Position numbers and translations under genes: made by a program. Of a stretch of 64,000 nucleotides of DNA, positions 3,501 to 32,667 are shown piece by piece (position 1 is the stretch's first letter; the number at the start of each line of letters is the position of its first letter). The notes under the pieces were generated by a model. That model made no database searches. It worked only from the letters and a program-made list of their open reading frames with translations, and was not told the origin of the DNA. The DNA is from Octopus sinensis. Taxonomy: Eukaryota. The stretch lies in assembly GCF_006345805.1 (NCBI RefSeq), contig NC_043005.1:61504001-61568000 (forward strand). Reading direction: 5' to 3'.

Positions 3501-3733
3501 TAAATATTCAATGATGCAGTTGTAGTAGGGGAACACGACTTGGGAGAGTCCGCTTGACATTAAAGTTTCAGTATTTTCCGTGTTAATAAGTGAATACGCA
3601 AAATTACCTTACACATTTTGCACCCATTTTCGGAATTGTTACACGTTATTTTGTTCTATAATGTGATTGCTATTGATTGGAACCTATTTCTTAATTGTGT
3701 CTTCAAAACTAATGTTGATTAACTAGCGATACT

Positions 3734-3900
3734 AAGGCAGCGAGCTGGCAGAATCGTTAGCACGCCAGGGAAAATGCTAAGCAGCATTTCGTCCAGCATT
3801 ACGTTCTGAATCCAAATTCCGCTGACGTCGACTTTGCTTTTCATCCTTTCGGCACTAGGGTGGATGTAATCGACTTAACCTCCACGCACCCCGAAATTAC
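3734..3900 (+). mobile_element. SINE family B (AAGGCGGCGAGCTGGCAGAA head), internally deleted
   Basis: Matches the head and central TTTCATCCTTTCGG...GATGTAATCGAC block shared by more than 10 copies in this window. Confidence 0.75.
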
Positions 3901-4525
3901 TTCTGTCTACCAAACAGTTTGAAACTAATATTATAATACTGTGTTGGTCGATCTAAATCCGCCACTCTTTTTTGTTTGGAGCTCATTTTTTGTATTTTTC
4001 TTTCGTATGATCCTTAAGGTCTTGGTGCTTGTGACCAATAAAAGAAAAAACATTGTCATAGAGTGCAGTAGAAGGTGATGGTGGACTTACAGAATAGCCA
4101 GAGTGTCGGGAAAATGCTTTGCACTATTTCTTTCAAGTTTTTAAATTCTCAGATCAAATCCTGCCGTGGTTAAATTTTTCCTTTTATCACCTGCCCCATA
4201 TCAATAAATCAAAGTATCAATTAAGTACAGGGGCCGATGTAACCGATTACTTTCCTGTCTACTCTACTAGGGTTGGAGACCGTATAAAAAATACTACGAG
4301 CACTTCACTTGTCTCCTCTCATTAAATCACATGCAATATCGTCTGCTAATCATATTTAAGAAGCGTGTCGTTGGCAGTCTCGGATCCGATAGGTAGTCGG
4401 GATACGCCAAGCTAAGTTTTTGTAGAAGAACTTCATAAAAGTAAAATCTTCAGTGGTTCTGTTACGCAAGTGAATACAATCGAAACAAATGCTGGAGATA
4501 TTTGGCCTTGTAATGCCGAGGAATG

Positions 4526-9798: not shown

Positions 9799-10759
9799 TA
9801 TGTATGTATATATATATATATGTGTGTGTGAATACACATACATGTTTATATACGTGAGTAAATAGAGAGTAGTTTTTTCTTACTAATTTGTTGTATTAAA
9901 AACAGTGCTATTTTCAGGTTTAATCTTTTCTTAAAGAGCTCTCCTATTTTCTTAATAATCCTTTGTGTTTGGTTTGGAACATTAACGTTCTTCAGTCCAT
10001 TAGTCTCACGCTTCGAGACCTCAATAATTTCATTTCGATATTAAACTGTTCCACTAGCTCAATGACCACGCGTTCTGCTTTTATTCGCAAAGTATCCTGG
10101 TAATATATTTAGAACTATTAAAATGTTCTGTGTTGAATTTGATATTAAATAAAATTGAATGTTGGTAGATTTCATGATATACATGTTTCAAATACTGTAT
10201 ATCTCGGTGCTAAATATAGTATTATTTATTAGTAGAACTGCCATACCTATTCACCTCTTGTTGTGAAATTCTATATAAAATTCTAGTACTGTTAACTAAT
10301 GTTTTTACTATCTGAAAATAATTTTCTTGTAATAAAGGCTACCTTTTTAAAACTGTAGTTATGCTTGTAAGTATGTTTAAAAAATGCACGTCTGATCACA
10401 AATGGAGTTGCTGCACATAAATAATGTATTTCATTCAGTGTAAATATAGTGTTTTTTTTTTATCTATATATCTCTTTTTTTTTATGCATCTATCTGTGTT
10501 GATGTAGCTTTTCATGTAAATGCTTGTGTGTAGCTGTGGCCTGTTTGTACGTTTCACTGTATTTGTTGTGTATATGTGTACGAAACTATGTTTGGCGATG
10601 AAGTGCAGCGTATGAATATAAAGTGAAGTCAAGAAGTGTCTCATTGTAAACAATGTTTTTAATCCTGAATAAAGTAAACTTTGTTATTTTTTTCCGGTAA
10701 AATTACAGATTATCACCCCCACGATTTTCACTAAAAAAAAAAAAAAAAAAAAAAACTCG

Positions 10760-11415
10760 GATTTTTTGCGTGGAATCAAATACCCTGACCTCCTAATATG
10801 CTGCAAATCCCATATTTTGGTCCGGAATTCCTCCGGAAGGGGGGGGGGATTACCCCCCCCCCGGAATTTTCACAAGGAAAAAAAAAAAATCAGATTTCTA
10901 GCGTGGAATCAAGTACCCTGACCTCCTAATATGCTGCAAATCCCATATTTTGGTCCGGAATTCCTCCGGAAAGGGGGGGTATTACCCCCCCCCCCCCGGA
11001 ATTTTCACAAGGAAAAAAAAAAAATCAGATTTCTAGCGTGGAATCAAGTACCCTGACCTCCTAATATGCTGCAAATCCCATATTTTGGTCCGGAATTGCT
11101 CCGGAAAGGGGGGTAACCCCCTCCCCCGGAATTTTCACAAGGAAAAAAAAAAAAAATCAGATTTCTAGCGTGGAATCAAGTACCCTGACCTCCTAATATG
11201 CTGCAAATCCCATATTTTGGTCCGGAATTCCTCCGGAAAGGGGGGGTATTACCCCCCCCCCGGAATTTTCACAAGGAAAAAAAAAAAATCAGATTTCTAG
11301 CGTGGAATCAAGTACCCTGACCTCCTAATATGCTGCAAATCCCATATTTTGGTCCGGAATTGCTCCGGAAAGGGGGGTAACCCCCTCCCCCGGAATTTTC
11401 ACAAGGAAAAAAAAA
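10760..11415 (+). repeat. Subterminal tandem array, 5 units of ~132-135 bp, in the left arm
   Basis: Motif GCGTGGAATC at 10768, 10901, 11036, 11168 and 11300. Confidence 0.95.
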
Positions 11416-11855
11416 ATAACATATCAATAATTTAGAAAAGAAACATTTCTAGAAAATAGTAAATTGAAGTGTCAACAAATTATTGGGCAAAATTGAAGTG
11501 TGAACAAATCATTGGGCAAAAGAAGATTTGGCATACTGTCATGCTTTTAGCTGTCAGAAGTGAAAGTCGTCAACTTCGTGTATTTGCGTCAGGTTCGCTG
11601 TTAGGCTTATAAAACAATAGAAGTTCAGTTTAAAGTTTATAAATAAATACATTTCATTAAATGTTCTGTTTAAACTTTATGAATAAATATATTCTTGCAG
11701 TGTGTGTATATGTGGCTATATGTCTGACTAATGTGTGTGTCTGTATTTATTGTATGTGTGTATAAGTAGTTATATGCTTATATTATCCATTATAGTAATA
11801 TTTGTCTGTTGAAACCTGTTTTAAGGCGGTCAATAGTTTAATTAAAGATGTATCT

Positions 11856-11919
<64 letters not shown>

Positions 11920-12227
11920 GTGTATATATACATGTGTATACATATATATATATATATTATATATATATATATATATAATATATATATATACATGTGTATA
12001 CATATATATATATATACACATGTATATATAATATATATATATACACATGTATATATATATACATGTATAGACACATCTTTAATTAAACTATTGACCGCCT
12101 TAAAACGGGTTTCAACAGACAAATATTACTATAATGGATAATGTAATGGATAAAATTCAGACAAACTTACCTCTTGCTGTCAAAAAAAGTGGATTAATTC
12201 TCAGCAAAACATACTGTTATGCTAGAC

Positions 12228-12365
12228 CAGTGGTTTTCAACCAGGGTTCCGCAAGAAGTTGCAAAACTGCTAAAATCGGCAGTAATTTTTAATTCTCCTG
12301 TGCAGATATGTGTGCATAAGACTATTAAATTATTGTACAGGGGTTCCTCGAGCCAGTGGAATGTT
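12228..12365 (+). mobile_element. Truncated hAT (Charlie-like) MITE end inside the foldback element
   Basis: Begins CAGTGGTTTTCAACC after a TGCTAGAC site, the TCTAGA-like target typical of Charlie elements. No right TIR. Confidence 0.6.
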
Positions 12366-13060
12366 TGAATTACGCTGTGTGGTTTCAGTTTCTAATTTTT
12401 GCTTCTGATCTCTCTTTGCCCCCCCTCTCTCTATCTCAGTTGTTCATTCTGCTGATATTTAGAAAAGTTTTCGCGCCAAGTTTTGTTGTGGGTGGGAAAA
12501 GATGAACGATTTAAAATAAATATACCTTAATTGTAGTGTGAGAAAGTATATATATTCTGATGATAAAATATATTATCTTTCAAAATCATCCCAAGTTATA
12601 GACTATATCGTGTATGTTTAAGAAATGGTTCATGAGACATTGTTCATCTGTCTCCCCACCACACCTCCACCTACACAAAAATTAGTTTGAGATAGAGAGG
12701 GCGGCACAGAGAGAGATCAGAAGCAAAAATTAGAACCTGACACTATCACAGAGCGTAATTCAAACATTCCACTGGCTCGAGGAACCCCTGTACAATAATT
12801 TAATAGTCTTATGCACACATATCCATTACATTTTATCCATTACATTATCCATTATAGTAATATTTGTCTGTTGAAACCCGTTTTAAGGCGGTCAATAGTT
12901 TAATTAAAGATGTGTCTATACATGTATATATATATATACATGTGTATATATATATATTTATATATACATGTGTATATATATAGACATGTGTATATATATA
13001 TATATTATATATATATATATATCTATATATATATATATGTATACACATGTATATATACAC

Positions 13061-13108
<48 letters not shown>

Positions 13109-13549
13109 AGATACATCTTTAATTAAACTATTGACTGCCTTAAAACAGGTTTCAACAGACAAATATTACTATAATGGATAATATAAGCATATAACTACTT
13201 ATACACACATACAATAAATACAGACACACACATTAGTCAGACATATAGCCACATATACACACACTGCAAGAATATATTTATTTATAAAGTTTAAACAGAA
13301 CATTTAATGAAATGTATTTATTTATAAACTTTAAACTGAACTTCTATTGTTTTATAAGCCTAACAGCGAACCTGACGCAAATACACGAAGTTGACGACTT
13401 TCACTTCTGACAGCTAAAAGCATGACAGTATGCCAAATCTTCTTTTGCCCAATGATTTGTTCACACTTCAATTTTGCCCAATAATTTGTTGACACTTCAA
13501 TTTACTATTTTCTAGAAATGTTTCTTTTCTAAATTATTGATATGTTATT

Positions 13550-13925
13550 TTTTTTTCCTTGTGAAAATTCCGGGGGAGGGGGTTACCCCCCCTTTCCGGA
13601 GCAATTCCGGACCAAAATATGGGATTTGCAGCATATTAGGAGGTCAGGGTACTTGATTCCACGCAAAAAATCTGATTTTTTTTTTCTTGTGAAAATTCCG
13701 GGGGGGGGTGTTACCCCCCCTTCCGGACCAAAATATGGGATTTGCAGCATATTAGGAGGTCAGGGTACTTGATTCCACGCTAGAAATCTGATTTTTTTTT
13801 TTTTTCCTTGTGAAAATTCCGGGGGGGGGGTATTCCCCCCCCCCTTTCCGGAGGAATTCCGGACCAAAATATGGGATTTGCAGCATATTAGGAGGTCAGG
13901 GTATTTGATTCCACGCAAAAAATCC
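13550..13925 (-). repeat. Subterminal tandem array, 3 units, in the right arm
   Basis: Reverse complement of the left-arm unit, with GATTCCACGC three times. One unit has lost the segment between its two TCCGGA motifs. Confidence 0.9.
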
Positions 13926-14868
13926 AAGTTTTTTTTTTTTTTTCTTAGTGAAAATCGTGGGGGTGATAATCTGTAATTTTACCTTTTTTCCATTTGTTTA
14001 TTGCTTATACGTGATTTTTTTATGCATGTTTACGTTTGTGTGTCGATGATCTGTTTATGCCAAGTGTAGTTGTGTTTTTGGGTATATCTTATTGTATCTA
14101 TATTTTTGTGTATATTTTATCGTATTTGTTGTGAATGTGTTTAATAAAAATGAGTAGCGTCTGAATACAAAATAAGCATACGTACTTTCAAATGGAATAT
14201 TATTATTATAAGACAAAGCAAAATAGAATATACGAACATAAAAAAGGCAAAATTTAAGTTACGGTAAACGGCTCAGCCGCATATATGGCTGACTGGCTAA
14301 AAAGTTCGTTGTGCAGTCATGATGTCTTGTTGTTAAGCAACAAGACGGGTATGGGTGATTAGATGATGGTCTAGAGCTTATGGGCGGGAGACCCCTGACC
14401 TTGGAAAAAAAACTTTGGTCGTCTTGTTGTAGTCGAGGGCTCTTCGTTGACGCCCGACACCACTGGGAGGTGGCCCTCAAAGTCGCTGGAAATGGAGATC
14501 TCCAGGTCCAAATTCTTGAACGGCGATATGATGTCTTGGGCTCATTGTCAATACCTGATATCATGACTAAATACCTGTTGTCATAATAATGAGTCGATCC
14601 ATGCACGGTGATTGGAAAATGTGTTAACGACCATTCAATGGGCTGCTCCTGTAATTCAAAAATTCAGCCTATATCAAATTGAGTTACACTGATTCTACTT
14701 GTGAATTAAGTTAAGGCTACGCGTGTCAGCGGAATATAGAACCATTTACACATTCATTAAAGCCTAGGCTGCTCAGTTGATCGAACGACTGGATTCACAC
14801 ATATTCTTGATTCCACACATATTGCCGTGTTTATGTGAGTGTGTGTATATATATATGTATGTATGTAT

Positions 14869-24389: not shown

Positions 24390-25262
<873 letters not shown>

Positions 25263-25720
25263 CCGGTTCCGTTTCAGCAGAGAAAGACGTGATTGCCTTT
25301 GCTCTGTGAAAAAGTTGCATAGAACGGCGAAATAACCCACTGTAGTTGCAAAACGTAAAACTCTAAGTCATAGAGATCACTACAACACTTGGTTAAAAAT
25401 ATTTTAAAAAAATATATATAAATATATACATATACACAGTAATTTTCATTTTCGCCGAAACGCACATGGTGCAAAAATAACTGAATCAAGTTATCTCCTG
25501 CGAAAGAAAGAAAAAGAAGCATCTTCCTGAAAAAAAATCCCGTAAAAAAAAAAAAAAATAATCCAGACCACATTGTTGGATTAAGTATCAATTTATCTAT
25601 TTCATATTTTATTTATTATTCTATTTTATCTTTCTCTTAGGCCCACATCTTAGTTAAGTTGCGATCGTCATTTTGTTTGTTTACATTTTCAATAACTGTT
25701 CTCGATATAATATTTTCCAT

Positions 25721-26900
25721 TACTCTATCTTCTAATTAGCCTTAGGATTAAATTAAATAACGTTTAATATTGTTTAATTGTTATAATTATTGTTAATTTA
25801 GCCTTAAGATTAAATTAAATAACGTTTAATATTGTTTAATATTGTTAATATTTCAGATACTCTATCTTCTAATTAGCCTTAAGATTAAATTAAATAACGT
25901 TTAATATTAATAACATCTAATTAGCCTTAGGATTAAATTAAATAACGTTTAATATTGTTAATAATTATTGTAATTAGCCTTAGGATTAAATTAAATACGT
26001 TAATGTTTAATATTGTTAATAATTACTGTTAATTAGCCGTAGATTAAATTTAAATAACGTTTAATATTGTTTAATATTGTTAATAATTATTGTGTAATTA
26101 GCCTTAGGATTAAATTAAATAACGTTTATATTGTTTAATATGTTAATAATTATTGTTAATAGCTTAAGATTAAATTAAATAACGTTTAATATTGTTTTAA
26201 TATTGTTAATAATTCTTCAGATACTCATCTTCTAATTAGCCTTAAGATTAAATTAAATAACGTTTAATATTACCCACACTCTAATATAATATAACATTGC
26301 TAATAATTTCAGATACTCTATCTCCTGATTAGCCTTAAGATTAAATAACGTTTTTATCCACACTCTAATAAAATTAATATTGCTAATATTTTCAGATACT
26401 CTATCTTCTAAGCCTTAAGATTAAATTAAATAACGTTTAATATTAATAACGTCTAATTAGCCTTAAGATTAAATTAATAACGGAATATTGCTTAATATTG
26501 TATATATAATTTTTAGATACTCTGTCTTCTAATTAGCCTTAAGATTAAATTAAATAACGTTTAATATTACCCACACTCTAATATAATATTAATATTGTAT
26601 ATATATTTTCAGATACTCTATCTCCAAATTAGCCTTAAGATTAAATAAGTTTTTTACCCACACTCTAATATAATATTAATATTGCTAATATATTTCAGAT
26701 ACTCTATCTCCTAATTAGCCTTAAGATAAACAACGTTTTATCCACACTCTAATATAATATAATATTGCTAATAATTTTCAGATACTCTATCCCCTAATAG
26801 CCTTAGATTAAAACGTTTTTACCCAAAATAACGTTTTTACACAAACTTTAATATTGTTAATATTCTTTTTCAAGTACTCTATTCTAATTAGCCTTAATAT
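25721..26900 (+). repeat. AT-rich minisatellite, ~17 units of ~50-95 bp with core AATTAGCCTTAAGATTAAATTAAATAACGTTT
   Basis: The core was counted about 17 times. Distal units add TTCAGATACTCTATCT and ACCCACACTCTAATATAA. Confidence 0.9.
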
Positions 26901-26960: not shown

Positions 26961-27875
26961 ATGTCCAGAGCATGGAGACGTGACGAGCTGGATTTATTCG
27001 TACGAGCATGGGAGTGCGCCGGCGGAGATAGCCCTAGCGAGGGTGGGTGATTGCGCTGCGCTGAAGAGCAGAGGCTACAAGGACAGCGGCTCAGATGGAG
27101 CGAAAGAGACAGGAATTCGTGCGCTCATATGCGCTTGTACGGTCGCACATTGGCGCCACTTGATGCCATCTTTGAGAACGAGCGGGGCAAAGATGGCAAG
27201 AATGGAGACGATGAAAGAAGTCACCCCCCACCTGGTGGACGCCCGGGAGGAGGTTTTGAATGAGAAACCTGCCCGGGAAGTGAACCCAGGTGCAAGTTCT
27301 CCAACCGGCAGCAAGGGCCATGGAGACGGAGAACCCGGTGAAGAGGTGAGAGGGAGGAAGAAGAACTAAAAGAAGGACTGGAAGAGCTAAAGGAAAAGAA
27401 AAAGCTCAAGCAGGACCAAAGAGTGAAACAACCAGAGGAATAGAGTGGAACCGCAAAGGATGGAACCAAACAGCGCACACGGGTGTGTATGTTCTACCTG
27501 AGAGGTTCCTGCTGGCATGGAAAGGAAGGTCCAGGCTGCCGCTTTGCACATCGGGGACCTGCCACAGAGACACGAGCAGATGGACAAACCATCAACACAA
27601 AGAAAAGGGATGGACCACGCACCACTGCCCCAAAGCGGAGGTACGCAGATGTTGTGCGCGCCACAAAACATCAACATGATGTTGTCGAAAGAGCAGCTGC
27701 TGAGCAACAATCTTTTTTGTGCATGGCACAAAAGATTGTACAGCAGCTGACCTGGCTTCATCAAACCCAAGCCCGCAGGTGGGACTACCCACTATATACC
27801 AGACCACCACAGCAAACAGACACAGGATGGACACCGCCGGCAACAACGTACACCTCACCTCGATACTCCTACTGA
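26961..27875 (+). pseudogene. LINE ORF1 (frameshifted): Myb/SANT-like N-terminus, charged linker, CCCH zinc finger
   Basis: ATG at 26961 gives MSRAWRRDELDLFVRAWE; other frames give LKSRGY and RTAAQMERKRQEFVRSY. CMFYLRGSCWHGKEGPGCRFAH starts at 27486. Stop at 27873-27875. Confidence 0.6.
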
Positions 27876-30807
27876 ACATCAGAGGACTGCAAACACTCAG
27901 TAAACAGGACAAAAGATCCCGTTCCTGAGAGACTTTGTTGCATGCAATCAAGCCTTATGCATAGCACTTACAGAAAACGCACCTGAAACCGGACATAGCA
28001 GATGCGGAGTTACACATACCACAGTATGCTGTATACGGACCGACGGAAGAAAGGAAAGGAGTCATGGAGGTGTTGCTATGTACATCCTGAGGACCTCACA
28101 CCCCAGGTCCTCTTGTCATACTCAAACTCGGTGTGTGACACACTAATTGTACATATTAGGCAACTTGATGTAGTTGTGTGTGCTACATATCGCCCTCCAG
28201 ATGCCCCAGCCATGTGGGCAAGTTTGAAGACTGCCTTATAAAAATAGAAGAAATTCTAACCACATTAGAACAACACATAGGTGTGCTTCTTATGGGAGAC
28301 TTCAATCTGCCCAATGTCAGATGGCCCGAGGGCCTTTCTCTCCCAGGAATGACAGATGTGAACGAGGACAGCGAGGTCCTCCTGAACCTCATGAACACCC
28401 TGTACATGGAGCAGGTAATACTCCAACCAACCAGGGCAGGTAACACACTGGTTCTCTGCTTCACAAATGACATGGATCTCATCCATAATGTGAAAGTGAC
28501 ACCGACACTACTCTCGGATCACAACATGATAGAGCTGACCATGTACGGGCCAAAAGAGAGCACGGACATGCAGCCTACAGAAACCTCAAATCTTTCCAGC
28601 TTGAACTACCATAAGGCAAACTGGAAACAAATTGAGAAAGAGATCCTCAAACAAAACTGGCCTAAATGTCTCTCCTCGCCAGACATCGACGTGAAACTTC
28701 AACAATTCATGTCTGTAATGCAAGCCATATGCTACAAATGTGTCCCAGAGAGAAAGGCCACTGTACACAAGAACAAAATCCCCAGAGAGAGAAAATTTTA
28801 ATGAGACGGCGTACGAAATTTTCAAATCGCCAAACAAACAGATTGAAAGCAGTGAAAAGTCCCGCCTAAAAATAAAACTGTTGGAAATCGAAAAATGTCT
28901 GCAACTCTCCCATGAAAAAGAAAGAGCAGACAAAGAAGCCTGGGCTATAGAAAACATAAAATCTAACCCCAGAGCTTTCTACAGGTATGCCAAAGAAACA
29001 GCTACGGTGCACTGTAGAATAGGGCCACTCCTCGAAAAGGATGGCACACTTACAGGAAAACCAATGAGGGTAAGTGAAATAACTGAATGAGCAATTCAAG
29101 AGTGTTTTCACTCACCCCTTGGGCATCTCCAAATCACCAATCCAAACTGACTTTTTTTACCACTGCAGATATAAAATCAGAGGCGGCGACGATAGATTAC
29201 ATCGATATAAAGGAAGACGATGTAACCAAGGCTATAATGAAATGAAAACAGACTCAGCTACTGGCCCCGATGGATTCCCGGCAATCCTCCTAAAAGCATG
29301 TAAGAGAGTCCTAGCAAGACCACTGCAGTTCCTCTTTCAGGCTTCCTTGCAGCTGCAAACTTCCAGGAAACTGAAGGAAGGTAAAATATGCCCATTCATA
29401 AAGGAGGTAGCAGAGCGGAAGCCAAGAACTATATACCTATCTCTCTGACCTCACACATCAGCAAGGTCATGGAACGAATAATCAGAAGGAAGCTGATCAC
29501 CTTCCTGAAGAGAATGACTTACTGCCCGACACCCAACATGGTTTCCGACCAGGGAGAAGCTGTTTAACTCAGCTCCTACAACACTATTGTGCTGGGTGCT
29601 GAAACGGCTGCTCAACCACTCAAATGTGGAAGTGATATATCTCGACTTTGCAAAGGCCTTTGATAAAGTCGATCATGGAATGATATGTCACAAAACTGCG
29701 TGATCTCAACATAGTTGGAAAACTGGGAGAATGGCTTCATGACTTTCTGAAGGATAGAAGTCAGGTGGTAGTAGCCAATGGGGCCACCTCCATTAACACA
29801 CAATAGTGAGCGGTGTTCCGCAGGGCACTGTTCTGGGACCACTACTGTTCATAATGGCCCTCTCAGACATGCCCTCAGCCACGCAGAGAGCCACGATCAC
29901 AAGTTATGCAGATGATACAAAAGTTTCACAGGCAATACAGAACTCTGAGGACACTAAACACCTGCAATGTGAGCTGGACGAAATATACAAGTGGGCTGAA
30001 AAGAATAGCATGCAGTTCAATGCTGGAAAGTTTCAAGCTTTATACTATCAGCATGCAAAACTGAATGCAATACCCAATGAATACACTGGACCCGGAGGGA
30101 TTGCAATCTCAGAGGCACAATCAGTGCGTGACCTGGATATTCACATGAGTGATGACGCGACCTTTCATGTACATGTTGCTAAACTGACAATGAATGTAGA
30201 CGGCTGGCTGGATGGATCTTAGAAACTTTAGAACAAGAGAACAAGAAACCATGATGGTCCTCTGGAAGACACTTGTCCTAAGCCACTTTGACTATTGCTC
30301 TCAGCTATGGTCACCATCCAGTGTCAAGTTGATCACAGAACTTGAGGCGATCCAACGAAGCTACACAAAGAAGATAGCCTCTATGCAGAATGTAAGCTAC
30401 TGGGAAAGACTCAAGAGATTAAAATTATATTCCCTGGAGCGTAGGCGGGAAAGATATGCCATAATATACATCTGGAAGATCCTGGAGGGAAGTGTCCTGA
30501 ACTTTGCATCGAGAGTTACGCAAATGCCAGAAAAAGGGCGCCACTGCGTGGTGCCTAGGACTCCAAACCTGCCATCAAGATGTAGGACAAGATCTGTGAT
30601 AGCCTGGGCTTCGAGGCCCAGCTCTTCAATATCCTCGAAGAACCTGAGAGACCTGCATGGGGTGGATACAGATGTCTTTAAAATGAAGCTGGATCTCTTC
30701 CTGTCAGGTGTCCCAGATGAACCAACTTCACGGCAGGAGGGCAGATGAGGGCAGCTGCATCGAACTCTCTCATCACCAAATAGCAGTTGCTAGAAAGCCT
30801 CCATGAA
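27827..30807 (+). pseudogene. LINE ORF2, APE endonuclease plus reverse transcriptase (many frameshifts as assembled)
   Basis: APE motifs LLNIRGL, YRPP, MGDFNLP, PTR and SDHN. RT motifs DFAKAFDKVDH, SGVPQGTVLGPLLF and YADD (29905-29916). Confidence 0.92.
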
Positions 30808-30948
30808 GTGAAACCAAGTAGCAACACCAAATGGCGGTGCCCCAGCATGGCCACAGCTCATAAGCTGAAACTAGATCAATCAATCAATCAATCAATCATA
30901 TATATATACATATATATATACACATAATATATACATATATATATACAT

Positions 30949-30996
<48 letters not shown>

Positions 30997-31258
30997 TAGA
31001 TATATATATATAGACAGATATATATACATATATATATAACATATATATATACATATATATAATATACATATATATATAACATTATATATATTACCATATA
31101 TATATATACATATATATATATCATATATATATATATATATATCATATTGAGTTTATTTCGAGATTTCTTGCTAATAGAGAAAGAGTTGGTTTCTAACCTA
31201 GATCCAAGGGTCATTGGAATTTCAACATCAGCAACAAGGTATTTTTGTATGTATGTAT

Positions 31259-31473
31259 ACTCTTTTACTCTTTTACTTGTTTCAGTCATTTGACTGTGGC
31301 CTTGCTGAAGCACCACCTTTTTTTAGTCGAGCAAATCGACCCAGGACTTATTCTTTGTAAGCCTAGTGCTTATTCTATCGGTCTCTTTTGCCGAACCGCT
31401 ACGTTACGGAGACGTAAACACACCAGCATCGGTTGTCAAGCGATGTTGGGGGGACAAACACAGACAGACAGAA

Positions 31474-31530
<57 letters not shown>

Positions 31531-31703
31531 CATATATATACGACGGGCTTCTTTCAGTTTCCGTCTACCAAATCAACTCACAAGGCTTTTGTCGGCCCGA
31601 GGCTACAGTAGAAGACAGTTGCCCAAGGTGCCACGCAGTGGGACTGAACCCGGAAACATGTGGTTCGTAAGCAAGCAACTTACCACACACCCATTCCTAC
31701 GCC
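31259..31703 (-). mobile_element. SINE family A, full length
   Basis: Reverse complement of the 579-1000 element, with an internal (CA)n/(TA)n tract. Confidence 0.9.
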
Positions 31704-32667
31704 TATGTGTATGTATGTATGTATGTACGTATGCATGTATGTATGTTTGCATGTATGTATGTATGTATGTATGCATGCATGTATGTATGTATGTATATAC
31801 GTACATGAGTATGAAATATGCAAAATGAATGTTGGTATATAAAAAAATATATGTATACCAATGATAGTATTATTTGTATGTGTGCGTGTGTGTTTGTGTG
31901 TGTCTGAATGGATGTATGCGTAGGTATGTATATTTAGATATAATTATTTCTATGTATACACCGAGTGAATGAACATATGTGTCTGTATACAGGTGCAGGC
32001 GAATAAGTCTCTTCTTGTGTGATGAGCGTATTTTGATGACTTCTTAAATGACTGTGAGGCGTATCAGTACAATTGATATTAAGCTTTACAAGTCGAGTGG
32101 CAGACAAGCTGGGATAGTAGGATGACTAAGAATCTTTTCATGAAAAACATTTACAGACAAAAGAGATAACGAATACTTCTAGTCTATATCCTAATATATC
32201 AAAACGTTAATCTATCTTCACAAGGAAAGAGATATGCTATGACAGAAGTTTAGGTTTGATTCTTATTTATATTTACACTTTCGATTTTTATTCTCATGAA
32301 CTAATTTTCGACCTTTTTATTTTTTACTGCCATTAATCTATTTGGTATTTGTTTGACTTATGCCTATTTGAGTCTGTAAGTTACTCAGAGAATGCTAAAA
32401 AATGTAATGGGAAACTGAACGTGATCAAGTTGGTTCCATCAAAGCCACGCACGTGATGACGTGCTACTACACAGTTGCTGGTGGATCATATTTAATCATG
32501 TAACTGTTTATCTATTATTTTTATATAAATAGAATGGTATAGAAAACCCAGCAACTAGCATTTGTTACCATTTCACAGAAACAATTGTTGTGATGTGCGA
32601 TCAAAGCTTGTTCATCCCATCTTCTGGTTGCATAAAGTTATATATATTTATTTATATTCATAAAGTG

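Follow-up and report, generated by a model that had tools for sequence, protein, structure and literature searches.

A young non-autonomous transposon with foldback architecture and probable Merlin ancestry in the Octopus sinensis genome

A 3288-bp palindrome at positions 10696-13983 of a 64,000-nucleotide stretch of Octopus sinensis DNA (the window, to which all plain positions refer) is a recently mobile DNA transposon of the non-autonomous cut-and-paste type, young and with the architecture of a foldback element. The whole 3.3-kb palindrome transposes as a single piece, and its family probably has its ancestry in the Merlin superfamily. The best joint explanation, to which we assign a probability of roughly two in three, is a Merlin-derived, trans-mobilised non-autonomous family whose palindrome arose by fold-back at a central repeat.

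Results

The mobile unit and its ends

The outer ends bound the mobile unit and form a perfect 39-bp terminal inverted repeat (TIR) that starts with GGTAAAATTACAG (5'-GG). They are flanked by an exact 8-bp target site duplication (TSD), TTTTTTCC, so that the GG-starting inverted ends and the 8-bp TSD of the original prediction were both found as described (Table 1). Within the window a 28-nt terminal pattern had 2 matches, versus 0 in 100 shuffles. Genome searches with the flanking sequences (10400-10695 and 13984-14280) showed each to occur once and consequently yielded no paralogous empty site. The element contains no ORF, and tblastn matched transposases only as short remnants, in line with the predicted lack of a transposase. 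A search of window positions 1-30000 against Rfam gave no match.

The arms are reverse complements of each other, 1461 bp long on the left (10696-12156) and 1154 bp on the right (12830-13983). Their predicted near-identity (~1.46 and ~1.15 kb) held at 432 of 434 positions outside the tandem arrays (11417-11850 versus 13114-13547). The arms differ from each other in indels and in the number of 132-bp units, and the difference in length is due to the presence of five such units on the left versus three on the right. Each unit closes with a TIR-like motif consisting of a C-run, GGAATTTTCACAAGG and an A-run; read directly from the sequence, this motif resembles the inner half of the outer TIR. Across family copies the arms carry 0-5 units each. 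Folding the element as single-stranded DNA also supports the anticipated hairpin of more than 1 kb: the predicted minimum free energy is -1489 kcal/mol (one shuffle, -282), and long-range pairing between the arms takes up 69% of bases.

Table 1. Features of the palindromic element and its target site, in window coordinates.
Feature	Position	Strand	Description
Left TSD	10688..10695		8 bp, TTTTTTCC, identical to 13984-13991
Left outer TIR	10696..10734	+	perfect complement of 13945-13983
Left subterminal array	10745..11416	+	5.1 copies of 132-bp unit
Left transposase remnant	11431..11533	+	Merlin (IS1595-type) N-terminal region, about residues 75-105; tblastn
Left inner arm	11530..11860	+	Merlin-A-like terminus (GGCATACTGTCATGC...) and 5' region, then to (TA)n tract
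Left (TA)n-rich microsatellite	11851..12069		core of left inner foldback
Left inner foldback, short arm	12064..12146	-	truncated inverted copy of 11778-11860 (inverted-repeat matches 95%, 97%)
Segment without partner in this copy	12147..12304	+	partner present in sister copies
Innermost host palindrome, left	12305..12363	+	pairs with 12765-12823
Nested MITE-like interspersed repeat, ~400 bp	12364..12764		own inverted ends at about 12364-12438 / 12688-12764
Innermost host palindrome, right	12765..12823	-	pairs with 12305-12363
Right inner foldback	12830..13113		truncated arm 12840-12922 and (TA)n 12917-13113
Right inner arm	13104..13434	-	inverted copy of 11530-11860; Merlin-A-like terminus outermost
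Right transposase remnant	13431..13533	-	copy of left; 29-bp duplication at 13443-13503
Right subterminal array	13548..13939	-	3.1 units, one only 116 bp
Right outer TIR	13945..13983	-	39 bp
Right TSD	13984..13991		8 bp, TTTTTTCC

Layers of the arms and the centre

The arms had been taken for unusually long modular TIRs. They read instead as a stack of distinct elements, whose layers from the outside inwards are the outer ends with the 132-bp arrays, the transposase remnant, a Merlin-derived arm with (TA)n, and the central MITE-like repeat. The left remnant contains a 29-bp tandem duplication (11461-11518). In the inner arm, the 5' region stops just upstream of the transposase gene start of autonomous copies. 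Immediately outside the inner termini, the 8-bp flanks (GAAGATTT and AAATCTTC) are inverted rather than direct, and this pair of termini is thus without a TSD. Inner-arm copies at other genomic loci begin at the inner terminus and extend past 11699/11700. A separate MITE beginning at 11700 was considered and rejected, since unrelated loci are continuous from the inner terminus through that point.

According to the original prediction, only 12157-12304 and a ~250-bp loop are unpaired. Both are present as stated, but the missing partner is peculiar to this copy. An inverted partner of 12147-12304 sits right of the centre in at least 11 sister copies, as seen from minus-strand matches to query 1-292 beside the plus-strand match in C24, C1, C11, C2, C8691, C6 and C30, although not in C9. 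The unpaired segment is evidently a copy-private deletion in which ~158 bp of the partner were lost at 12823/12830. Further inwards lies a central inverted repeat (12305-12438 / 12688-12823). The MITE-like repeat forms the symmetry centre of the element, and its interior is the ~250-bp loop (12439-12687). This repeat also occurs by itself: among the matches listed from a search with 1142 first-look candidates, at least 25 loci align only query 218-480/527/618, at 76-92% identity, and listed loci show small inverted matches at 218-278 / 542-618.

A palindrome of this kind might be an assembly artefact laid over a simpler element, through a missed adapter in a long read or a misassembled inversion. 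False palindromes can occur in long-read assemblies, and the homopolymer-rich units invite small assembly errors. This palindrome, however, stops exactly at the transposon termini with an exact TSD, and the differences between its arms in indels and unit number are not of a kind that a read artefact would create. Independent assembly of the same architecture, down to the centre, moreover occurred at no fewer than 12 loci, which lie on different chromosomes and have different TSDs. We therefore regard an artefact as highly improbable.

A family of mobile copies

Termini of the family were found 206 times in the genome at up to 3 mismatches from the consensus end, versus 0 for a control pattern; 157 lie within 3 mismatches of this copy's own end variant. 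All listed termini but one begin with GG (the exception with GA), a boundary fixed by the TSDs. Among 25 complete end pairs, the direct repeat is exactly 8 bp in 16 and 7 or 9 bp in none, and one pair has a 10-bp repeat in a poly-A/T tract. The 16 8-bp TSDs differ in sequence from one another. The genome-wide check of the termini thus sustains the prediction of a non-autonomous foldback DNA transposon, with recurrent ends and an 8-bp TSD as a family trait.

Family copies range from MITE-size (95-464 bp) up to 5.7 kb. The MITE-size members have the same ends and 8-bp TSDs; the window copy, at 3288 bp, is above MITE size (less than about 800 bp). Its centre (12147-12829) recurs at no fewer than 12 loci with 97-99% identity and its arms recur elsewhere in the genome with 96-100% identity. 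The TSDs differ among the full-length collinear copies (L033, L035, L038, L039, L040 and L041). Palindromic structure extends to a second subfamily with outer ends (L034/L036), which has other insides and arms that are 98-100% complementary. Pfam searches of ORFs crossing the arrays and of the L034/L036 insides gave no match.

This family-wide TSD table refutes a local inverted duplication of host DNA with a chance 8-bp repeat in T-rich sequence. The TSD at this locus is indeed T-rich, but 15 other copies carry exact 8-bp repeats of unrelated sequence, and neither the count of 206 termini against a control of 0 nor the single-copy flanks agree with a local event.

Evidence for and against a Merlin origin

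The Merlin superfamily comprises eukaryotic relatives of bacterial IS1595/IS1016. Its elements are defined by a terminal 5'-GG, a TSD of 8 or 9 bp and TIRs of 24-462 bp (PMC8101967). The outer ends agree with this definition in terminal GG and TSD length, and the 39-bp perfect TIR falls inside the published range. The full inverted arms (1154-1461 bp) lie far outside it, but they are composite, with unrelated modules stacked rather than one TIR extended. The arms also hold remnants of a DDE_Tnp_IS1595-type transposase gene together with a Merlin terminus. In tblastn the remnant at 11431-11533 is 89-94% identical to the transposase query over 18 and 8 residues, and the transposase that it matches scores PF12762 at an E value of 1e-19.

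Longer remnants adjoin the arrays at the equivalent place in two sister copies, L022 and L029. The L022 remnant covers residues 23-84 of a 249-aa query (L031:2299-3048) in three tandem copies, and at the DNA level it shares 95% identity with the Merlin-A copy L064. An apparent second transposase family with 57% identity in L022 and L029 was rejected, its low score being due to array sequence translated in frame before a fragment of 85-90% identity. In four further loci (L034, L036, L045 and L046) the outer ends enclose a transposase N-terminal fragment and a Merlin-A-like 3' subterminal region in the correct order, without any GGCACTG terminus. The genome is well stocked with Merlin families, with at least 150 PF12762 matches scored of 690 first-look candidates. 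An outer terminus at C7:85,566,475-85,566,510 (-) has a same-strand PF12762 match 1.7 kb inside and is a candidate end of an autonomous member.

The suggested Merlin-like character therefore stands as far as the GG ends, the 8-bp TSD and the Merlin pieces in the arms are concerned, but a copy with these ends and its own transposase was not found. Among 47 loci around termini, none is an autonomous element combining GGTAAAATTACAG ends with its own DDE_Tnp_IS1595 transposase; between the outer ends lie only N-terminal transposase remnants and the 3' subterminal region. The sole family copy with transposase genes, the 5.7-kb L031, owes them to a nested Merlin-A element with ends GGCACTGTCATGCC... 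and its own 8-bp TSD, CCTGACAC. L031 was accordingly rejected as proof of Merlin identity, since its transposase module has termini and a TSD of its own and is common to many independent copies. The remnants are no proof of descent from Merlin either: in a palindrome, Merlin pieces could reach both arms through one capture or nested insertion with subsequent fold-back.

These observations bear on a second reading, in which the outer ends belong to a different superfamily with 8-bp TSDs, most obviously hAT, or to one not yet described, and the Merlin pieces are passengers doubled by fold-back. hAT elements likewise produce 8-bp TSDs, and the genome contains an intact, multi-copy 720-aa hAT, one copy of which lies 8 kb from a family member. 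The one family member that contains transposase genes demonstrably acquired them by nested insertion, and this nesting makes passengers plausible. The outer ends are unlike Merlin-A in sequence, and neither they nor the 132-bp unit show similarity to Merlin-A loci beyond poly-A. In hAT elements the TIRs are short and end in a CAG/TAG-type terminus, the TSDs are biased towards nTnnnnAn, and the transposase carries the hAT dimerisation domain. The 16 TSDs, however, lack this bias, with T at position 2 in 2/16 and A at position 7 in 6/16, and the ends start with 5'-GG as in Merlin (PMC8101967) rather than with a CAG/TAG-type terminus. Proximity also favours Merlin over hAT: a PF12762 match lies less than 10 kb from 7 of ~105 family loci, versus 1 for the hAT domain PF05699, in a hand tally among the matches listed that includes TE-dense small contigs. 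No hAT coding remnant was noticed among family copies. Against a passenger role, Merlin pieces directly adjoin the arrays in several subfamilies that differ in their insides, and in every case the Merlin-A terminus is absent. We judge non-Merlin ends unlikely, at a level that still deserves weight, and favour descent from Merlin.

Comparison with foldback-like transposons

Long inverted arms dominate the element and its internal tandem repeats vary in number, as in the foldback-like class. Elements of the Galileo and Drosophila Foldback/Tetris types have very long inverted arms with tandem repeats whose number varies between arms and copies, and most are non-autonomous two-arm elements (PMC3573991, PMC4079207). 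The window family shares the long arms, the tandem repeats, the variable repeat number and the predominance of non-autonomous two-arm copies. Motifs in the Galileo arms bind transposase (PMC3688188); the repeated arm motifs of the window element might have a comparable role. Galileo has a TSD of 7 bp (PMC3573991) and a THAP/P-type transposase, whereas the window family is strictly 8 bp, with IS1595-type coding remnants: 16 pairs had 8 bp and none 7 bp, and no THAP/P-type remnant was seen.

In root-knot nematodes, Tm1 (Mutator/Foldback) has composite foldback-like TIRs of variable length. Its members are MITE-like or longer, and a rare coding copy led to the inference of a single transposase lineage (PMC3169594). 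The window family resembles Tm1 in all of these structural traits. Tm1, however, has a TSD mostly of 9 bp (8-10) and a MULE transposase (PMC3169594), neither of which the window family shows. The exact 8-bp TSD in 16/25 pairs thus argues against the P/Galileo and MULE origins that had been named as alternatives.

A further comparison comes from the same genome. A 3.37-kb Merlin-A palindrome with two transposase genes occupies L031:1718-5088 and, flanked by a different 8-bp TSD, C18:28.004-28.008 Mb. Here too a whole element has been made a palindrome and transposes as a unit, and Merlin-A is a relative of two layers of the window element, the transposase remnant and the inner arms. The Merlin-A palindrome differs in its termini and consists of two 3' halves around a tiny centre with the genes kept, whereas the window element joins two 5' halves, has outer ends and arrays in addition, and lacks a gene.

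Proposed origin and mobilisation

Under the favoured explanation, the family would descend from a Merlin-superfamily transposon, with copies moved in trans by a Merlin transposase, and the array motifs would be putative extra binding sites for it. After a break beside the central repeat, the repeat's inverted ends would have folded back and served as primer for copying the left half, giving an element with two identical ends that could transpose; when single-stranded or transcribed, it may form a hairpin of more than 1 kb. Fold-back priming at the central repeat is the most likely origin of the palindrome on its anatomy alone, the symmetry centre being an independent repeat with its own inverted ends. 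Two reports (PMC7467729, PMC10622511) describe fold-back priming at inverted repeats beside breaks as an established route to inverted duplications. The palindromic L034/L036 subfamily and the Merlin-A palindromes also speak for such an origin.

Discussion

Drosophila FB and Tetris are orphan foldback-like elements. Others have been documented in the P (Galileo, PMC3573991) and Mutator (Tm1, PMC3169594) superfamilies, and confirmed Merlin ancestry would extend the architecture to a third. A full-text literature search for Merlin and foldback together returned incidental mentions only, and a recent repeat annotation of Octopus vulgaris gives two recently active Merlin families only, with palindromic forms unmentioned. 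The layers of the window family, from the ends with their arrays through the gene remnant and the inner Merlin arm to the central MITE, are clearly distinguishable. Palindromes recur in several Merlin lineages of one genome, and this makes the foldback origin testable, because priming at a nested inverted repeat predicts centre positions. At mobile perfect hairpins longer than 1 kb, replication is fragile and ectopic recombination takes place; such hairpins are also likely sources of double-stranded RNA, and they are often mishandled by repeat annotators and assemblers.

The Merlin-A family also forms head-to-head palindromes at several loci. Altogether there are at least four independent palindromic lineages: the two-gene Merlin-A, the foldback of the inner 5' end, and two subfamilies that have outer ends but differ in their insides. 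Merlin-lineage elements here might conceivably become whole-element palindromes through their own transposition or excision repair rather than by rare accidents, a proposal we hold to be doubtful. If it were true, the genome would keep acquiring mobile hairpins longer than 1 kb, and their transcripts would be long double-stranded RNAs, in an animal whose RNA editing is known to be heavy.

Structure and mobility of the palindromic element

The element is bounded by 39 bp in inverted orientation, beginning GGTAAAATTACAG, and is flanked on either side by the target site duplication (TSD) TTTTTTCC. The 64-kb window contains two matches to the terminal pattern; 100 shuffles yielded none. Both flanks of the window copy occur once in the genome. 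Outside the tandem arrays the arms agree at 432 of 434 positions, bearing out the original prediction of a palindrome with near-identical reverse-complement arms and an exact 8-bp TSD. The arms are unequal in length because the left array holds five 132-bp units and the right one three. The predicted single-strand DNA fold of the element reached -1489 kcal/mol, versus -282 for one shuffle, with arm-to-arm pairs holding 69% of the bases. As anticipated, the element lacks a transposase: positions 10696-13983 contain no ORF of note and only a short coding remnant.

Searching the 2.72-Gb animal assembly, in which the window is G000:C9:61504001-61568000, with the consensus outer end (up to 3 mismatches) returned 206 matches, 106 forward and 100 reverse, against 0 for a control pattern, so the ends are not restricted to the window; the end variant of the window copy is common to about seven copies. 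Exact 8-bp direct repeats, every one of different sequence, abut 16 of 25 complete pairs, which makes the predicted 8-bp TSD a family trait. One further pair has a 10-bp repeat in a poly-A/T tract, and no 7-bp or 9-bp repeat occurs among the 25. Copy length spans 95 bp (a pair of abutting ends) to 5.7 kb, with MITE-size forms of 230-460 bp in between. A pair of outer termini 8.3 kb apart stands at C3:17,005,820-17,014,096. The full-length 3.3-kb architecture recurs collinearly at six loci on other chromosomes (L033, L035, L038, L039, L040 and L041), the centre (12147-12829) is found at 12 or more loci with 97-99% identity, and the arms recur elsewhere in the genome at 96-100%. The outer elements form a family of transposons, and the palindrome is mobile as a whole. 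A chance TSD or a local misassembly at the window element is excluded by the family-wide TSDs, the 206 ends and the recurring architecture.

TSD length also bears on the P/Galileo and MULE origins that had been offered as alternatives. Galileo, of the P superfamily, has a 7-bp TSD (PMC3573991) and the MULE Tm1 mostly one of 9 bp (PMC3169594); since that of the outer family is strictly 8 bp, the former is excluded and the latter unlikely.

Features of the element, the window and related loci (L, numbered genomic loci; G000:C, contigs of the assembly)
Feature	Position	Strand	Description
Element	window 10696-13983		bounded by 39-bp inverted ends and TSD
Left arm	window 10696-12156		reverse complement of right arm
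Right arm	window 12830-13983		reverse complement of left arm
Layer a	outermost		39-bp end
Layer b			array of 132-bp units, each closing with C-run, GGAATTTTCACAAGG, A-run
Layer c, coding remnant	window 11431-11533, mirrored at 13431-13533		translated match to transposase N-terminal region
Layer d, inner arm	window 11530-11860		second terminus GGCATACTGTCATGC..., then ~170 bp
Layer e, central repeat	window 12364-12764		interspersed, MITE-like, own inverted ends
Layer f, unpaired segment	window 12147-12304		partner missing in window copy
(TA)n/(CATA)n microsatellite tract	window 24420-26000		long
Decayed LINE	window 27483-31828	+	ORFs match Exo_endo_phos_2 (E 1e-9) and RVT_1 (E 8e-11)
Merlin-A palindrome	L031:1718-5088 = G000:C5:62,817,221-62,820,591		3.37 kb, own ends and TSD CCTGACAC
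Second Merlin-A palindrome	G000:C18:28,004,400-28,007,700 (L051/L054)		8-bp TSD ACTTGCTT
Candidate autonomous copy, terminus	G000:C7:85,566,475-85,566,510	-	outer-family terminus
Candidate autonomous copy, domain	G000:C7:85,564,374-85,564,742	-	PF12762 match

The arms are a stack of nested modules

Long modular terminal inverted repeats (TIRs) had been predicted. Long inverted arms with tandem arrays are present, but they consist of stacked, nested modules and not of one expanded TIR. Read from the sequence, the closing motif of the 132-bp unit is similar to the TIR's inner half, which consists of C-run, CGATTTTCACTAAG and A-run; unit number varies from 0 to 5 between arms and copies. Translated, the coding remnant gives 18 + 8 residues that share 89-94% identity with a transposase in its N-terminal region; the C-terminal part of this transposase matches DDE_Tnp_IS1595 (PF12762) with E 1e-19. 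A 29-bp tandem duplication falls inside the remnant. At locus L022, transposase residues ~23-84 are retained in three tandem copies that abut the array's last 132-bp unit; L029 has a similar arrangement. At L022:1690-2160 (G000:C1:205,415,507-205,415,977) a ~206-bp piece of the gene is tandemly multiplied beside the 132-bp array; gene fragments, like non-coding units, therefore become subterminal repeats.

The inner terminus and its ~170 bp share homology with the end and 5' region of Merlin-A, a co-resident autonomous Merlin family. Because other genomic copies begin at this terminus and run through to a (TA)n tract, 11530-11860 plus (TA)n is one unit, a Merlin-derived foldback. The inner termini face outward as a proper pair. 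The 8-bp sequences flanking them on the outside form an inverted instead of a direct repeat, so the pair was doubled together with its surroundings and not inserted as a finished element.

Among 1142 first-look candidates, at least 25 of the loci listed match the central repeat at 76-92%. The inverted partner of 12147-12304 lies right of the centre in at least 11 sister copies, and the window copy, judged from these, carries a private deletion of ~158 bp at 12823/12830; since the sister copies keep the partner, the palindrome of the canonical element extends as far as the central repeat. The unpaired segment (12157-12304) and ~250-bp loop noted in the original prediction are thus both present, but the first reflects this deletion and the second is the interior of the MITE-like repeat.

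Long arms, tandem arrays and mostly gene-less copies are shared with Galileo, Tm1 and FB; the 8-bp TSD, the Merlin-type remnants and the nested-module arms are not. No description of Merlin foldback elements was found in the literature searched. The architecture is foldback-like.

Origin of the palindrome and its recurrence in Merlin-A

The element is symmetric about a repeat that has inverted ends of its own. In two studies (PMC7467729, PMC10622511), fold-back priming is described as an established route to inverted duplications, proceeding by a break, resection, intrastrand annealing at a nearby inverted repeat and synthesis back along the same arm. By analogy, we infer that the palindrome arose by fold-back priming at the central repeat. 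An asymmetric ancestor would have broken just right of this repeat, and fold-back there would have copied back the left half as far as its terminus, giving a product with two identical ends that a transposase treating both alike could move. The palindrome habit recurs in the window family, in Merlin-A and in a second outer-end subfamily (L034/L036) whose insides differ and whose arms are 98-100% complementary.

Merlin-A has ends GGCACTGTCATGCC..., measures ~1.6 kb and carries one gene of 305-332 codons (e.g. L061, L058, L059, L062). Its 3.37-kb form is almost perfectly palindromic and carries the transposase gene twice, in divergent orientation; an AT-rich, near-palindromic site lying immediately upstream of the gene marks the centre. 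There are at least two transposed copies; as the two loci have different 8-bp TSDs (CCTGACAC, ACTTGCTT), this form was transposed as a palindrome. One of them lies in L031, a 5.7-kb copy with outer-family ends and two inverted PF12762 genes. These genes were rejected as proof of the Merlin identity of the outer family, the module being a nested Merlin-A with its own ends and TSD: its edges are common to many independent copies, and its TSD sits within the central repeat of a host element like that of the window.

Further head-to-head Merlin-A gene pairs lie at C18:14.98, C4:155.06, C2:78.03 and C16:32.48 Mb. At G000:C19:28.53-28.73 Mb, at least 10 Merlin-A-like transposase fragments (~83% identity) with the same stop codons, ~7-50 kb apart and some inverted, look like one block multiplied by segmental duplication and not like separate insertions; the block contains one outer-family terminus (28,669,169).

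Superfamily of the outer ends

Merlin elements are defined by a terminal 5'-GG, a TSD of 8-9 bp and TIRs of 24-462 bp (PMC8101967). The outer family has the 5'-GG and the TSD length. In several subfamilies that differ in their insides, its ends enclose both coding and non-coding Merlin pieces, with no Merlin-A terminus. In L045 and L046 the order is N-terminal fragment, 3' subterminal region (~73% identical to Merlin-A), unique DNA, arrays and end, as expected of one gene-bearing ancestor. By hand tally of the matches listed, 7 of ~105 family loci have a PF12762 match within 10 kb, where ~0.2 would be expected at random. We give Merlin ancestry and mobilisation of the outer family a probability of about 0.7.

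Alternatively, the outer ends would belong to hAT or another superfamily and the Merlin pieces would be captured passengers, which in a palindrome a single capture event places in both arms. hAT elements also make 8-bp TSDs and an intact 720-aa family is present in the genome, but only 1 of the ~105 loci has a match to the hAT domain PF05699 within 10 kb in the hand tally of matches listed, our control for transposon clustering, against the 7 near PF12762; we consider this origin less likely.

For the Merlin assignment, the original prediction of a Merlin-like element holds as to the 5'-GG and the 8-bp TSD, and Merlin pieces lie in the arms. No autonomous copy with outer ends was seen among the loci examined around termini, and neither the outer ends nor the 132-bp unit showed similarity to Merlin-A. 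The best candidate for an autonomous partner is the C7 locus, with a PF12762 match 1.7 kb inside an outer terminus; the strand of the match fits a gene transcribed inward from that terminus.

Other features

The 720-codon hAT frame is uninterrupted at C14:18,218,472, C3:171,446,422, C4:9,500,476, C5:38,919,211, C13:17,708,868 and C28:5,405,727. As at least six loci share this frame and have the same domain scores, the family was probably active recently. Two of its copies lie 8-11 kb from outer-family members or fragments.

Within the window, the (TA)n/(CATA)n tract accounts for a drop in GC to 0.19 along the composition profile. In L035, an ORF at 3726-4118 (G000:C8691:41,631-42,023, minus strand), placed between truncated and complete outer-family copies, matches the Treslin N-terminal domain (E 6.5e-8) and is probably a host exon or gene fragment.
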